IMG/VR virus record: IMGVR_UViG_3300035156_000206
Location: 1 to 64,000 of that record
Length of the DNA: 64,000 nucleotides
Reading direction: 5' to 3' (one strand)
The notes under the pieces were generated by a model. That model worked only from the letters and a program-made list of their open reading frames with translations. It was not told the DNA's origin and ran no database searches. Both the position numbers and the translations under genes were made by a program. Position 1 is the first letter of the stretch, and every line of letters starts with the position of its first letter. This document shows, in pieces, positions 2,878 to 38,429 of this stretch.

Positions 2878-2952
2878 TGGATGCGGGAGGACGAATCGAA
2901 CGTCCGGGGCTTGGCTTATGAGACCTAGTTTGCCACCAACGACATTCCCGCA
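2878..2952 (-). tRNA. tRNA-Met/fMet-like (CAT), atypical
   Basis: TGCGGGA/TCCCGCA acceptor, CT-CAT-AA, TTCGATT T-loop, CCA; mismatch in anticodon stem and weak D-stem. Confidence 0.7.
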
Positions 2953-3339: not shown

Positions 3340-3609
3340 CTACAGCTTCACCCACTCATTGTAGATCTCTTCTGCCTCTGCCTTGATGGAGGCATCAATG
3401 TCCTCGTCCGTCATATCTGCAGTTCGGTCATCGTCCCAGATGGAGTACAGCTCAGTAGCAATAGTGTTCAAAGCTGTCAGCTTCGCATCCGGATCTTTGA
3501 TGTTGATGGCCAGCTCAGGCATATCACGAAGAGTATCTTCTTCACAGCTCTGGTTGTGAACTGCACCAATCAGTGCAGACTTGAACACGCGGAATGTACT
3601 GTTTGCCAT
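3340..3609 (-). CDS. Hypothetical protein
   Basis: start moved to MANSTF after GAGGAG RBS and repeat promoter. Confidence 0.8.
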   Translation of the reverse strand: MANSTFRVFKSALIGAVHNQSCEEDTLRDMPELAINIKDPDAKLTALNTIATELYSIWDDDRTADMTDEDIDASIKAEAEEIYNEWVKL

Positions 3610-3620
3610 TTCATTCTCCT

Positions 3621-3666
3621 CATCAGTTAATACATTCATTATACTGACTTTTGGAAAAATGTCAAC
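3621..3666 (-). promoter_or_regulatory. Early promoter+leader repeat (variant)
   Basis: TTGACA-17-TATAAT...AACTGATGAGGAG. Confidence 0.85.
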
Positions 3667-4397
3667 TAGGCTTTACGCATCACAAACAGAGTCATCGTCT
3701 TGTCTGGAATCTGTTGCAGTTTGTCCTGCTTCAGTTTCCATTGCTCCATGCCGGCAGGCGTCAGGCCCGAAGGTGCTGTACGAGGCAGGGGACGTGCAGA
3801 CCACAACTTGTCATCTGGCAGGTTGCTACCGTTGTAGACGAACGGTTTGCCATTTGCGTCTGGCATTGGGACACCATCAACAATCACATTGATGACATAG
3901 CCACGTGCACCAGCGGCGAGCTTCTTCCACAACTCAGCACCACCTTGGTATTGGGTGTTGTCGCTGATGATCGTCAAGCCCATCTCAACGAGGGCAACGT
4001 ACAGCATCGCACCGTAGCCACCACGAGCCATCTTCGGATCATTTGCAACGACGAGGTCGACCTGCACCGCACCTGGCAATTTAAGGCCCGGATTGCTGTT
4101 GCTGATCATCTGCTCTTTAAAGTCCAGCGTCACGTAGACGGCTGCACCAGCGACATTGTCTGCAGGACGAGTACCGCGCTTACCAATGAATGCTCCGCTG
4201 TGGTCTTGGCGAATGTAGACGACGTAGTTCGGGTCGTCCTTCACCAGCTTGAATTCATCGGCCAAGGTCCGATCGCTAAAGAAGTGATCGAAGCTGCTGG
4301 TATCCATTTGGAGCTTTTTTGGTTTGCCATCGGCATCTTCAGGGGCGTATGGCATCTCTTTGAGCAGGTTCTCGTTAAGTATTTGGTCTAATCGCAT
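3666..4397 (-). CDS. Late protein with GNAT-like motif A and N-terminal ILNE, possible internal head protein
   Basis: 243 aa; MRLDQILNE; ARGGYGAMLY; TAAATA at 4420-4425. Confidence 0.7.
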   Translation of the reverse strand: MRLDQILNENLLKEMPYAPEDADGKPKKLQMDTSSFDHFFSDRTLADEFKLVKDDPNYVVYIRQDHSGAFIGKRGTRPADNVAGAAVYVTLDFKEQMISNSNPGLKLPGAVQVDLVVANDPKMARGGYGAMLYVALVEMGLTIISDNTQYQGGAELWKKLAAGARGYVINVIVDGVPMPDANGKPFVYNGSNLPDDKLWSARPLPRTAPSGLTPAGMEQWKLKQDKLQQIPDKTMTLFVMRKA

Positions 4398-5166: not shown

Positions 5167-5186
5167 AAAAGGACCCGAAGGTCCTT
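5167..5186 (-). terminator. Terminator hairpin, same as 1392
   Basis: AAGGACC-CGAA-GGTCCTT with A run. Confidence 0.8.
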
Positions 5187-5191
5187 GTCTC

Positions 5192-5368
5192 TCAATCCAT
5201 TTCAGACTGAGTCAGTTTATCGATTGCTTGGTTGTAGCTTCGGCGCATCGCACGCATGAAAGCTTTGCGTCCTTTACGGCCGCTTGGTGCACAGCATGAG
5301 CAGTGCAAACCTCCACCACCGAGCTTGGCATGGCAGGTTTTGAGAAAGTGTTTCTTTTCGCGAATCAT
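5192..5368 (-). CDS. Small basic CxCC protein
   Basis: start moved to MIREKK after GGAG RBS; GGGGLHCSCC motif. Confidence 0.65.
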   Translation of the reverse strand: MIREKKHFLKTCHAKLGGGGLHCSCCAPSGRKGRKAFMRAMRRSYNQAIDKLTQSEMD

Positions 5369-5420
5369 GGTTAGGGTCTCCTTATAATAACCTAATGCAT
5401 GGTACGCTCCTTTCTTTTGT

Positions 5421-5617
5421 TGGGCAGGACTAGATGGAATCGCACCACCGACCTCTTGGTTAAATACCAAGCGCTCTACCATCACGGCCGTTGGTTGGAG
5501 CACCCAGGTAACGTTACCTCCCGGGCGAGTCTGACGTCGTTTCGTGATGTTGGACATTCACATTAACGAGGAGGCCTCCCCGTCGCAGCCGCAGTCCACA
5601 AACTGAGCTATAGTCCC
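5421..5617 (-). ncRNA. tRNA-like RNA (UUU anticodon) with 120-nt insertion in the D-loop
   Basis: GGGACTA/TAGTCCT acceptor, GCTC/GAGC D-stem, CTTGG/CCAAG anticodon stem, GGTGG/CCATC T-stem; insert 5481-5600. Confidence 0.8.
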
Positions 5618-5629
5618 ATTGATCTGTAA

Positions 5630-5719
5630 TGGCGGAAACGGTGGGATTCGAACCCACGGGCCCTGTTACGGGCCGCCGGTTTAGCAAACCGGTGCCTTAA
5701 GCCTCTCAGCCACATTTCC
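5630..5719 (-). tRNA. tRNA-Ser (GCT)
   Basis: class II cloverleaf, TT-GCT-AA, long variable arm, CCA. Confidence 0.95.
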
Positions 5720-5736
5720 GAACAACTATTTATTCG

Positions 5737-5827
5737 TGGCGGAAGCGGTGGGATTCGAACCCACGGAGCCCTTTCGGACTCGGCAGTTTTCAAGACTGCT
5801 GCCTTAAACCAGCTCGGCCACGCTTCC
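5737..5827 (-). tRNA. tRNA-Ser (TGA)
   Basis: class II cloverleaf, CT-TGA-AA, CCA. Confidence 0.95.
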
Positions 5828-5846
5828 TTAGTTAAGCACTACGTTA

Positions 5847-5938
5847 CCCGGAGGGAACTAGACGGATCTCCACTCTGACTGCCTTTCGGCACCTGGCGAT
5901 TTCCAAAGAGTCCGAACCTACCCTAGCCGATAACTGGG
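5847..5938 (-). ncRNA. Candidate rod-like RNA with GAAA tetraloop
   Basis: nested helices GCTAG/CTAGT, CGGA/TCCG, ACTCT/AGAGT, TGCC-GAAA-GGCA; no ORF; first unit after promoter. Confidence 0.5.
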
Positions 5939-5998
5939 AGAAATTGTTGCCATCTCCTTCAATAAATCAGAGGCCTACGCAGCGCTTCACTAATGACA

Positions 5999-6026
5999 AT
6001 TATACGCATTGCTACGTAAATGTCAA
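5999..6026 (-). promoter_or_regulatory. sigma70-type promoter for the Ser-tRNA cluster
   Basis: TTGACA-16-TATAAT. Confidence 0.75.
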
Positions 6027-7620: not shown

Positions 7621-7644
7621 GTCCCTATTTATGGGCAACTAATG

Positions 7645-7751
7645 CCATATGGGGTGAGTTGTGGGCCCGTAATTCGCGCTTCATCGCTAGCGCCGCCAAA
7701 GGCGGCAAAGCTTGGTTCGCACTTTTCTGTTTGCACAACCCACCCCATATG
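7645..7751 (-). ncRNA. Candidate ~106-nt structured RNA
   Basis: about 18-bp closing stem CATATGGGGTG-GGTTGTG/CACAACT-CACCCCATATG plus inner hairpins. Confidence 0.65.
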
Positions 7752-7758
7752 ACACTAT

Positions 7759-7898
7759 GTAGATGACTAAAGGGTGGCCACCGAAGGCGCCTGCGAGAAG
7801 GGAAGCCTGACGAAAGGAGGAGGTCTCAGCCCGCCTTGGGGGGAAGGTGGATCTCTACTTTACGCAAGCGGCCTCGGCGCCACTCTTTAATCGACTAC
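7759..7898 (-). ncRNA. 140-nt sRNA with C-rich loops, antisense to early leader/SD
   Basis: promoter 7905-7933 predicts +1 near 7898; ends pair; hairpin contains ACCUCCUCCUUUCGUCAG. Confidence 0.75.
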
Positions 7899-7904
7899 AA
7901 GATC

Positions 7905-8213: not shown

Positions 8214-8322
8214 TTTATGAGCATGTCTCTATATAATGGCATGCGCATAAAGAAGATCCCTCTTCTTCCTAGTTTCCGTTCTAGGTTATGGGGCACTCCC
8301 CATTCGGTAACTGCAAGTTATT

Positions 8323-8475
8323 TGGTACCGGGGGCAGGCCTCGAACCTGCAAAAAAGCAAACTCAACACGGCCGTGCCTTGTTCGCCCTTACAACCCATG
8401 GCCTCCCCACTCACCTAGTCTAGCTTCACTGAGCAGGTACTAACACAGGGCGTCTACCACTTTCGCCACCCCAGC
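8323..8475 (-). ncRNA. tRNA-Leu-like RNA with about 60 extra nt in the anticodon/variable region
   Basis: GCTGGGG/CCCCGGT acceptor, Leu-type D-arm GGCGAAAGTGGTAGACGC, GCAGG-TTCGAGG-CCTGC T-arm, ACCA; 153 nt. Confidence 0.75.
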
Positions 8476-8645: not shown

Positions 8646-8661
8646 GCACTACTCCTTAAAA

Positions 8662-9059
8662 TGGGTCCCCCTTTCGATGACAGGGACTAGTGAACCTTTC
8701 GGCTCAGTAGCGGGGGATTATTTCAACCCTGCAAAGTTAGTTAGGCGTAAGCCGCTACTTTGAATTGTGAGTCGTTTGCATTTACATGCTTGCATCTTTT
8801 CGCCTTACGGCCGAGGATCGCTTCTCGTGTTGTCAACCTACGGTTATCTCACCACGTCGAAACCAGGTCGCCCCCATCAGCTGCACTTTCAGGTCTATGT
8901 CTGGTGTACCAGTCCTGAGAATTGATGTTATCTCATCTTCGAAAGCGCAGTTGGTGGAGGCGGCGGGAATCGAACCCGCGTCCGCAATGCCTTCACTTTG
9001 GCATCTGGATAGGTCTTACCCTACCCCACAACAATGTATCCGTTGATTTCTCAACTGAT
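8662..9059 (-). ncRNA. ssrA: Circularly permuted (two-piece) tmRNA
   Basis: acceptor piece ending GGTTCGATTCCCGCCGCCTCCACCA at 8952 is transcribed before GGGGGCGACCTGGTTTCGAC at 8875; tag ANDSQFKVAAYA at 8741-8779; outer ends approximate. Confidence 0.9.
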
Positions 9060-37079: not shown

Positions 37080-38429
37080 TTACACTCCGAAGTTGTGAGG
37101 GGCGATGTTAACCGAGTCGAACTCTCCACCGAATGATGGTACAGCAACTGAGTAGAACTGCGACTTCACAGAACCGTCTGGCACTTGCTTATCGGGACGA
37201 CTATGCTGACGGTCCAGCAACTGCTGTAACGATGCTGGGATGTACAAGGCAGTAACACGCATCCCACGCTGACGAGCCATATCGATGTAACGCTTTCGAC
37301 GTTTGGCACCAAGGTTGGTGTTATCTACCAAGATGTGCTTGTTGTCTTTGAACACCGCATTGATTGCCTCTGTCACATACGCATCGAACTCTTTCTCATT
37401 CGCTACCGCATATTCATAGGCGCTGTGGTAGTTGAAGCGGTTGCACTCGGGAGAGATCCCTTTCATCACGTCAACGTGGCCTAAAGCAAACTTGTAACGC
37501 AAGTCGTCAAGTGAGAACGGGACGAACCCTGGCAATGCCGCACGCAATGAAGACTTACCAGCACCTGATGGACCAATCATCATGATCATCTCAGGTGTAT
37601 CTTGTTTGTTGTTGATCTGTTCGTTCAGATGAAACACAGTAGCCCCCATGTTCTCCAGAGTAGATTGGCGTTCAGCAATCCAATCCATCATGCGACCGCA
37701 GTTACCAGCGTAGTCGTCCGAATCGCGTCCTTCTGTATCGCCCTTCAGCATGTTGAAGAACACCTCTGGTCCATTAGGCAAGAAGGTCATTACCAACGAC
37801 TTGTCAAGTGCCAGTACTTTGTCCTTGTTCTTCAGGCCGTAAGGCAAGTGATGCTCGATCATCCATGTGATGACATACACGTCCCAGATCGTGATCAGAC
37901 CTTCGAACATCGCCCAGTTGTCGATCACGTAGCCTTCGAACCTGCGGGCAGACTCAGCTTCGTGGCCAGCATATGAACGGTATTCACCACGCTCATCGGA
38001 GATCTTTGTTACTTCCGCTGCAGGCTTGCCTGTATCGTGGAACAGCAAGGCCAGCGATACCAGAACGATGTGGCGACGATTGAACCAGTTGTGCTCTTCT
38101 GCTACCCTGCGTTCACCTGAGGCAGCATTCAATCGTTCGATGTTGCCTGGTGAGAACGTATCCACACACTCCATCTCAAAACGCTTCAGCAATTGCTCAC
38201 GTTCCGAGTCATATTCAACCAGTGTTGGCTTTGGGAAGTGCTTGGCAGCTGCTACCAGAGTCATCTCGGTATGGAAAGCCACATTGGCTTCACGGTGCCA
38301 AGGAGAGTCCTCGACAGTGTTCTGCATCTCTTTCCAAAAATCTGTCAGCTTGAATTCCCCGATTAACGCTTGTAAACGCGTTAAATCGTATTCTAAGCGT
38401 GGTTTTGCTGTGGAATCAGTAGTAGTCAT
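37080..38429 (-). CDS. HD-domain plus P-loop (AAA_33/PNK-like) kinase fusion
   Basis: WH.E..V..HT and LFHDTGKP; GPSGAGKS and LVDNTN motifs. Confidence 0.85.
   Translation of the reverse strand: MTTTDSTAKPRLEYDLTRLQALIGEFKLTDFWKEMQNTVEDSPWHREANVAFHTEMTLVAAAKHFPKPTLVEYDSEREQLLKRFEMECVDTFSPGNIERLNAASGERRVAEEHNWFNRRHIVLVSLALLFHDTGKPAAEVTKISDERGEYRSYAGHEAESARRFEGYVIDNWAMFEGLITIWDVYVITWMIEHHLPYGLKNKDKVLALDKSLVMTFLPNGPEVFFNMLKGDTEGRDSDDYAGNCGRMMDWIAERQSTLENMGATVFHLNEQINNKQDTPEMIMMIGPSGAGKSSLRAALPGFVPFSLDDLRYKFALGHVDVMKGISPECNRFNYHSAYEYAVANEKEFDAYVTEAINAVFKDNKHILVDNTNLGAKRRKRYIDMARQRGMRVTALYIPASLQQLLDRQHSRPDKQVPDGSVKSQFYSVAVPSFGGEFDSVNIAPHNFGV

Follow-up and report, generated by a model that had tools for sequence, protein, structure and literature searches.

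The window analysed here (positions 1-64000 of IMGVR_UViG_3300035156_000206) is a 64 kb stretch of a 292 kb jumbo phage contig, to which no GenBank phage is close. It encodes nicotinamide phosphoribosyltransferase and a cytidyltransferase/NUDIX protein typical of phage NAD salvage, a helicase, a tail-fibre protein and, at 37080-38429, a kinase-domain protein that matches a PHROG named polynucleotide kinase and, weakly, one named RNA ligase. In addition, six tRNAs were called by ARAGORN together with a permuted tmRNA. Near one end of the window, where the surrounding genes are on the minus strand, two normal tRNA-Ser genes are followed by a 197-nt tRNA-like RNA gene, herein referred to as E1, and by a small ORF. 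The features of this region are as follows.

The locus and its tRNA-like element

5999..6026 (-), sigma-70 consensus promoter (TTGACA-16-TATAAT, 12/12 match) of the putative transcription unit
5630..5827 (-), two normal tRNA-Ser genes (UGA at 5737-5827, GCU at 5630-5719), upstream in the same unit
5421..5617 (-), E1, the whole 197-nt tRNA-like RNA gene (cloverleaf plus D-loop domain)
5479..5600 (-), D-loop insertion of 117-120 nt
5551..5598 (-), hairpin A of the insert, with the tip palindrome GGAGGCCUCC (5570-5579)
5480..5549 (-), hairpin B of the insert, closed by CAUCACG/CGUGAUG and containing UCACGAAACG (5538-5547) and the tip palindrome AGGUAACGUUACCU (5506-5519)
5455..5471 (-), anticodon arm CUUGG-UAUUUAA-CCAAG (A33 at 5465, UUU at 5462-5464)
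5433..5449 (-), T arm GGUGG-UGCGAUU-CCAUC (G55 at 5443)
5421..5432 (-), acceptor 3' strand UAGUCCU plus tail GCCCA (5425..5421; CC kept, final A not in register)
5192..5371 (-), 59-aa basic, Cys/His-rich ORF with a strong ribosome-binding site, 50 nt downstream of E1
5169..5186 (-), terminator-like hairpin that would end the unit

On the minus strand, 5617..5421 reads as a full cloverleaf with acceptor stem GGGACUA/UAGUCCU (G1.U72), U8 and A9, D stem GCUC/GAGC, the anticodon arm, variable loop AGGUC and the T arm, all 21 stem pairs being intact. The D-loop holds 117-120 extra bases, and the boundaries of the insert are ambiguous because UGG occurs on both sides. The first-pass annotation had described a tRNA-like RNA with a structured 120-nt D-loop insertion, A33, G55, a UUU anticodon and an encoded G-CCCA end, and this observation was confirmed by our reading. 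Its insertion point, between positions 17 and 18 (5600..5481), is one of two possible parses; the other, directly after G18G19 in the variable position-20 pocket (5595..5479), is favoured by the homologs described below. The 14-nt palindrome is present as claimed, and so is the UGCGGCUG/CGGCCGUG complementarity near the insert ends (5593..5586 with 5490..5483), but the energy minimum prefers other pairings.

The gene is missed by standard searches on the genomic sequence. ARAGORN gave no call, and the Rfam tRNA model (RF00005) gave only a partial 19-bit hit against a gathering score of 29. After deletion of the insert, however, ARAGORN called tRNA-Lys(ttt), and the call held over a band of neighbouring deletion boundaries. 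E1 also lacks features of a canonical decoding tRNA, having A33 instead of U33, G55 in the T loop and a GCCCA tail in place of CCA. Co-transcription with the tRNA-Ser genes, also proposed in the first-pass annotation, is plausible but inferred from the arrangement: the promoter at 6026..5999 is followed by a leader of about 170 nt, tRNA-Ser(UGA), tRNA-Ser(GCU), E1 and the 59-aa ORF, and the scan listed no other terminator-like site on this strand before 5186..5169. A coding explanation of E1 is unlikely. A 121-aa frame runs from inside the insert through the tRNA 3' half into the 59-aa ORF, but it has no ribosome-binding site at its start, whereas the 59-aa ORF has AAGGAG at good spacing and homologs of its product are 53-66 aa.

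Related elements in other phages

Searches with DNA patterns did not detect relatives. An exact 31-mer, an A33/G55 pattern, a junction pattern and a shared 5' module each found only this contig in IMG/VR, while the metagenome and GTDB hits for the module were chance hits in high-GC DNA. A generic pattern for a D-loop gap returned adjacent tRNA pairs and tRNA genes with insertions elsewhere, with no second case among the first 119 stretches listed. Of the neighbouring proteins, the upstream 248-aa protein found only itself in a word-indexed protein search, and the SprT-like protein two genes upstream led to a syntenic Logan contig (L122) that ends at a promoter just before the expected tRNA cluster. 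A protein scan of JGI metagenomes found nothing. In contrast, an exhaustive HMMER search with the 59-aa ORF found about 20 small homologs, which in most of the other phage contigs examined lie in or next to tRNA clusters. The best hit, P0012 (62% identity), has a 307-nt gap upstream.

Three sets of Logan contigs detected in this way are informative. L174 (SRR25400369) has the same order as the window, tRNA-Ser(UGA), tRNA-Ser(GCU), two elements missed by ARAGORN and then the small ORF, with an SprT-like gene further downstream. L170/L172 (SRR28494067/101) hold two more elements. In L126 (SRR25068756), the tRNA-Ser is followed directly by the small ORF and the flanks align with those of the window, indicating an empty site; the element is therefore dispensable.

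Altogether, five distinct sequences of 195-206 nt were obtained from three phage lineages, E1 and four more from two related phages:

Y1 (L170:3036-3238), the closest homolog of E1, with acceptor GGGACUA/UAGUCCC, the same 5' flank GAUCAAY, an insert beginning ACGGCUG...CGACGGGGAAG against ACUGCGGCUGCGACGGGGAGG in E1, anticodon arm CCGGG-GUCGC-CCCGG (a 5-nt loop without anticodon) and tail ACCU
X1 (L174:657-862), with D stem ACAC/GUGU, a 7-nt Asn loop UUGUUGU (GUU) with U33 but G37, a canonical T loop and tail GCCA
X2 (L174:881-1075), with loop UGGAUAA (GAU, with G33) and tail ACCA
Y2 (L170:2114-2316), with a canonical tRNA-Ile loop CUGAUAA (GAU), a canonical T loop, tail ACCA and one A.G mismatch at the base of the anticodon stem

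In all five, the D-loop reads A14...GG, then the insert, then A21, and U8 and A9 are invariant. The first-pass annotation had held that absence of a stable transcript, together with absence of conservation or covariation of the stems in homologs, would mark E1 as a decayed pseudogene; the comparison of homologs was carried out, and E1 passed it. On the five-sequence alignment, 98.1% of cells of the cloverleaf spanning the insert are paired and 13 of 21 pairs are changed on both sides; none of 500 shuffles did as well, and slid controls pair at 41-50%. E1 and Y1 share the acceptor stem, the 5' flank and insert motifs (GGAC, GGCUG, CGACGGGGA and GGGARGUARCGYUACC), and so the insert predates their split. 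Even so, their anticodon stems differ at most pairs and still pair (CUUGG/CCAAG against CCGGG/CCCGG), indicating that this helix has been kept since the insertion. In contrast, the anticodon loop is the least conserved part of the family.

A covariance model (R1) built from the five sequences scores them at 147-175 bits (154.7 bits for E1) and ordinary tRNAs at 77 bits or less. With this model, no other long member was found in 151 kb of related loci or in 805 kb of unrelated phage tRNA-cluster loci. A scan by deletion followed by ARAGORN gave ten candidates in 980 kb of unrelated phage tRNA-cluster loci holding 708 tRNAs. The eight distinct ones (two repeat in contig L120) were adjacent tRNAs, tRNAs with insertions elsewhere, normal tRNAs with a slightly long D-loop or otherwise unconvincing, and none was a D-loop case of roughly 200 nt. 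Together with the homologs and the covariation, these controls rule out chance as the explanation of E1. A second odd element within the window, E2, shares two 9-mers and a 5' module with E1 but is not matched by R1; it looks like a tRNA with a duplicated 5' part.

The D-loop insert and a module shared outside the clade

The sequence similarity between the inserts is low, with global alignment z-scores of 0.1-1.7 for most pairs and 3.3-3.4 only for Y1/X1 and X2/Y2. The length, however, is kept, D-loop plus insert being 127-138 nt. When the D-loop region was folded alone, all five gave two adjacent hairpins in the energy minimum with no common closing stem. Hairpin A is 41-56 nt in the four that were measured, while hairpin B is 69-75 nt and ends next to A21. 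The folds are not much more stable than those of shuffled sequences (z from about 0 to -2.5), and no consensus secondary structure of the insert could be derived from five sequences, since the MAFFT alignments are unreliable there and the motif order differs between E1 and Y1.

The hairpin tips are palindromic at fixed distances from the 5' end, at RNA positions of about 38-50 (GGAGGCCUCC, CUCUUGCAAGAG, UUCUGCAGAA and UCUGCAGA) and of about 99-118 (AGGUAACGUUACCU, GUAGCGCUAC and UAGCGCUA). In total, 8 palindromes of 8 nt or more were detected against 2.4 expected from shuffles, and 4 of 1000 shuffles were as high. The tip of hairpin B follows the motif GGGARRUARCGYUACCYG in E1, Y1 and X1, including an A-U to G-C swap at the first and last bases of the central four that keeps the sequence a palindrome. 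This could mean a duplex or dimer form, or a constraint at the level of DNA or protein binding, between which the sequences do not distinguish.

A scan of IMG/VR for the hairpin B motif gave five other contigs, of which three were chance hits. The other two, L184 and L185, from unrelated phages, carry a different tRNA-like RNA of 160 nt, herein referred to as Z (L184:11722-11881 and L185:13072-13231, minus strand). Z has an acceptor stem, a class-II-type D arm and a T arm with loop UGCAAAU, containing G55 as in E1, but in place of the anticodon arm it has a domain of about 90 nt closed by GAUAGUC/GRCUAUC. The two copies are 84% identical with 7 compensatory pairs. The domain of L185 begins with UCACGAAACG followed by GGAGGUAACGUUACC, while E1 has the same 10-mer (5547..5538) and the same hairpin, CGGGAGGUAACGUUACC, separated by 15 extra bases; the L184 copy differs by one base in the hairpin. 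Since the 10-mer was not part of the search pattern, it is independent evidence of common origin. Rfam has no family for Z, and the domain was not found in GenBank phages.

Known families of introns and catalytic RNAs were also examined. No Rfam match to group I introns (Intron_gpI, E up to 10) or group II introns was detected at E1 or at the homolog loci. The insert of 117-120 nt is too short for a group I core (P3-P9, about 200 nt or more), and no boundary parse gives both U at the 5' exon end and a terminal G while keeping G18G19. A GUGGA...AU parse resembling group II or group III ends exists, but no domain V-like hairpin was seen. No hit to self-cleaving ribozymes (hammerhead, twister, twister-sister, pistol, hatchet, HDV-like and hairpin) overlaps E1, Y1, Y2, X1, X2 or Z at E up to 1-10. 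On inspection by eye of E1 and Y2 alone, no bulge-helix-bulge, with two 3-nt bulges separated by a 4-bp helix at the splice sites, was seen. There is no YrlA or tmRNA match at E1, its anticodon arm is present, and none of the 30 window ORFs scanned against Pfam or PHROGs matched TROVE. The insert also does not behave as a multicopy palindromic (MITE/REP-like) element, because its motifs occur only in E1 and E2 within the 64 kb examined of the 292 kb contig and the combined 5' motif occurs in no other IMG/VR contig.

Possible nature of the element

We tentatively favour (probability of about 0.45) the reading that E1 belongs to a small family of non-decoding tRNA-like scaffold RNAs of roughly 200 nt, found in a clade of jumbo phages, in which the insert is retained. 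In this view, E1 would be transcribed with the two tRNA-Ser genes and, because the tRNA body is intact, be cut out and finished by the ordinary tRNA machinery, by RNase P at the 5' end and then by 3' trimming and CCA completion. The two hairpins would stay in the mature RNA as extra arms projecting from positions 20-20b, the solvent-exposed, length-variable pocket of the D-loop. The tRNA body would bring the RNA to a tRNA-recognising partner, either a host tRNA-targeting enzyme or a phage or host tRNA-handling protein, and the hairpins, especially hairpin B with the conserved ACGAAAC strand and the GUAACGUUAC-type tip, would supply a second binding surface. What the sequences themselves demonstrate is the conserved and covarying interrupted cloverleaf, the common insertion point with intact elbow nucleotides (U8, A9, A14, G18G19 and A21), the kept length, two-hairpin layout and palindromic tips, the loss of a decoding loop in E1 (A33), X2 (G33) and Y1 (5-nt loop), and the recurrence of the hairpin B module in Z, where it sits in place of the anticodon arm and cannot be a removable intron of a decoder. 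Expression, the processing steps, retention of the insert, tRNA mimicry and any partner are inferred from sequence alone.

The main alternative, less likely but possible, is that the insert is an intervening sequence, either a new small intron class targeting D-loop position 20 or an rRNA-IVS-like spacer, which would be removed by an unknown ribozyme activity, by host RNases or by a phage cut-and-rejoin pathway to give a normal-length or two-piece tRNA. The exons join into a clean cloverleaf accepted by ARAGORN, and Y2 and X1 look like working tRNA-Ile and tRNA-Asn apart from the insert, which fits excision better than retention. The identical insertion site with diverged and mostly unconstrained insert sequences is intron-like, short modules shared between different tRNA-like hosts (E1 and Z) and HNH endonuclease-like motifs among the tRNAs of L170 suggest mobility, the window encodes the kinase-domain protein with its polynucleotide kinase and weak RNA ligase matches, and unexplained tRNA introns are present in Lak megaphages (PMC6784885). 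Against removal, no known intron or ribozyme family was matched, three of the five hosts could not decode normally even after removal and yet maintain their stems, and in Z the shared module replaces the anticodon arm. Decay of tRNA genes hit by a small palindromic (MITE-like) DNA element, or by a partial internal duplication of the 5' half, to give pseudogenes without function is unlikely but remains possible. It would account for A33, G55, G1.U72 and CCC in E1, for the tips being palindromic as DNA, for the resemblance of hairpin B to a tRNA 5' half (GGGAGAUAGCGC...), for an alternative inner 5' half in X1, for the empty site in L126 and for the unremarkable fold stability. Neutral decay, however, would break stems, whereas the stems covary, the elbow nucleotides are invariant, length and layout are kept despite sequence turnover, and the insert is not a multicopy element within the 64 kb window.

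The interpretation in the first-pass annotation, a tRNA-scaffolded functional RNA or a new small intron class, was thus partly supported, since these two general alternatives are the readings that survive. Its specific example, a tRNA-Lys(UUU) decoy (or resistant substitute) for anticodon nucleases such as PrrC or PARIS AriB, is very unlikely and gets no specific support. The UUU anticodon with A37 A38 resembles tRNA-Lys, A33 sits next to the PrrC cleavage site, and the phage carries the kinase-domain protein. However, the homologs carry GUU, GAU or, in the closest one, no anticodon at all, indicating that the UUU loop is not a conserved feature of the family.

tRNA-like RNAs and interrupted tRNA genes are already known, but no description of D-loop insertions or domains in phage tRNAs or tRNA-like RNAs was found in the literature searched. 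Archaeal tRNA genes with non-canonical bulge-helix-bulge introns, including introns at D-loop positions, likewise carry an intervening sequence in an otherwise intact cloverleaf missed by standard finders. The context here, however, is bacterial and phage (a permuted tmRNA, sigma-70 promoters and phage genes), the insert of 117-130 nt is larger than the short introns of archaeal tRNAs, several hosts lack a usable anticodon loop, and no splicing endonuclease was identified within the 64 kb window. The nearest report is the "enigmatic" tRNA introns of Lak megaphages (Devoto et al. 2019, PMC6784885), which are conserved insertions in tRNA genes of large phages, one of them resembling a tRNA as hairpin B resembles a tRNA 5' half. 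Those introns were predicted with eukaryote settings of a tRNA finder, which model anticodon-loop introns, while the insert described here is in the D-loop, is about 120 nt long with a two-hairpin layout and sits in hosts that have partly lost decoding features. Group I introns also interrupt bacterial and phage tRNA genes, but they sit in the anticodon loop. In tmRNA, bacterial and phage YrlA (Y RNA-like) and the MHV68 TMERs, a tRNA-shaped part gives processing, stability or protein recognition while an added domain carries the function, and TMERs also total about 200 nt with two stem-loops. In tmRNA and YrlA (where a Ro-binding helix is added) this domain replaces the anticodon arm, as it does in Z but not in E1, and in TMERs the hairpins follow the tRNA, whereas in E1 all four arms are kept and the domain leaves from D-loop position 20. 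Intervening sequences of bacterial 23S rRNA, removed by RNase III without re-ligation, are likewise extra hairpins of variable sequence inserted at a loop and present in some strains only. This is not known to have been described for tRNA, and here two side-by-side hairpins of tightly conserved length share no closing stem.

It also remains possible, at a similarly tentative level, that phages carry an undescribed class of modular tRNA-shaped RNAs, in which a conserved hairpin module (ACGAAAC strand plus a GUAACGUUAC-type tip) is displayed on a tRNA body either as extra arms leaving D-loop position 20 (E1, Y1, X1 and perhaps X2 and Y2) or in place of the anticodon arm (Z), and which would act as tRNA mimics in phage-host conflict or in phage tRNA metabolism. 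Alternatively, the same module would mark a new mobile mini-intron that invades tRNA genes and is removed by a pathway not yet known in bacteria.

tRNA-shaped RNAs are a recurring way for viruses to engage host machinery, and phage tRNA clusters are now seen as part of the arms race with tRNA-cutting defence systems. Since standard tRNA finders and Rfam miss these genes, phage tRNA inventories and the "intergenic" stretches within tRNA arrays are being misread. If the insert is removed, it would be a new type of intervening sequence in bacterial viruses, bearing on the unexplained tRNA introns of megaphages. If the insert is retained, this family would be, to our knowledge, the first natural tRNA-like RNA that keeps all four arms and adds a large domain at the D-loop, a natural version of the engineered "tRNA scaffold".

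tRNA-like RNAs E2 and Z

Apart from E1, the 197-nt tRNA-like RNA with the D-loop insertion, the following tRNA, tRNA-like and tmRNA features were recognized in the window and in two unrelated IMG/VR phages, represented by the contigs L184 and L185.

Window 8321-8475 (-), E2, a second aberrant tRNA-like RNA of 155 nt
L184:11722-11881 (-) and L185:13072-13231 (-), Z, a tRNA-like RNA of 160 nt
Window 2878-2952 (-), a second tRNA-Met called by ARAGORN
Window 8650-9044 (-), a phage-encoded two-piece (permuted) tmRNA

E2 is missed by ARAGORN, by Rfam and by R1, the covariance model built from E1 and its four homologs. It is composed of the acceptor GCUGGGG/CCCCGGU with ACCA, a normal D arm and a normal T arm, while the anticodon arm is replaced by about 100 nt, of which the central region includes an inner second copy of a 5' half (GUGGGG-AG-GCC...). 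E2 shares with E1 the sequences GGGGAGGCC and ACGGCCGUG and the module GCUCAGU-N-GACU-N-GGGGAGGCC, and this module was detected in no other IMG/VR contig. In the relative L122, a plain tRNA-Cys with similar 5' and 3' ends is located in the equivalent tRNA cluster.

Z has an acceptor stem, a class-II-type D arm and the T loop UGCAAAU, but a domain of about 90 nt with long conserved single strands is present in place of the anticodon arm. The two copies are 84% identical with 7 compensatory pairs, and no match was found in Rfam. Z looks like a structured RNA family in its own right.

The tRNA-Met at 2878-2952 was called by ARAGORN but was not reported by the Rfam tRNA model, even in the permissive scan. 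The permuted tmRNA carries the tag ANDSQFKVAAYA and scores 79.8 bits on the betaproteobacterial tmRNA model, which hints at the host group.

Insertions in other phage tRNA genes

Many metagenomic phage tRNA genes carry insertions in the anticodon region, including those at L126:620-726 and 926-1046, those of the contigs L021, L036, L089/L120, L091 and L109, and that at L185:12696-12841. The insertions that were measured are about 30-70 nt in length, some of them contain hairpins, and most of these genes are missed by ARAGORN. The tRNA-Gly(UCC) genes at L179:828-920 and L068:4857-5000 have moderately enlarged D-loops of about 17-21 nt, and these may be small versions of the same tolerance for extra D-loop bases.

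Protein-coding genes and open frames

The protein-coding features and open frames observed are as follows.

Window 5192-5371 (-), an ORF for a 59-aa basic, Cys/His-rich protein
Window 5192-5557 (-), an open frame of 121 codons that runs into the 59-aa ORF
L170:2410-2840 and 3470-3880, and L178:2592-3182, HNH endonuclease-like ORFs
L181:7984-8162 and L182:6009-7167, a TROVE (Ro60-like) gene with a weak Pfam hit

The 59-aa protein contains the motif CHAK..GGGG..C.CC and has about 20 small homologs, which are located in or next to tRNA clusters in most of the other phage contigs fetched. The same motif is repeated nine times in one 1953-aa protein (P0013), and there is no Pfam family. The open frame of 121 codons runs from inside the insert of E1, through the tRNA 3' half, into the 59-aa ORF. 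This frame is judged to be coincidental, because its start lacks a ribosome-binding site and homologs of the product are all 53-66 aa.

In the related phages, the HNH endonuclease-like ORFs are situated between the tRNA and tRNA-like genes. In L170, HNH-type motifs were recognized in the DNA sequence, while in L178 there is a Pfam HNH_3 hit. The putative TROVE gene of the phages L181 and L182 lies 3-4 kb downstream of the small-ORF homolog, and is preceded by an untranslated gap of about 400 nt, which could hold a Y RNA-like gene.

Leader sequences

The 5' untranslated region of the SprT-like gene, at window 7640-7900 (-), follows its own promoter-like sequence and contains a long-range helix, CAUAUGGGGUGGGUUGUG / CACAACUCACCCCAUAUG, that encloses about 70 nt. 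The leader of about 170 nt at 5828-5998, ahead of tRNA-Ser, likewise remains without explanation. For E1 and three of its homologs, Y1, X1 and X2, the leader located immediately upstream from the mature 5' end is conserved, reading GAUCAAU, GAUCAAC, GAUCAAU and AGUCAA-U, respectively. This conserved leader may be a processing signal.
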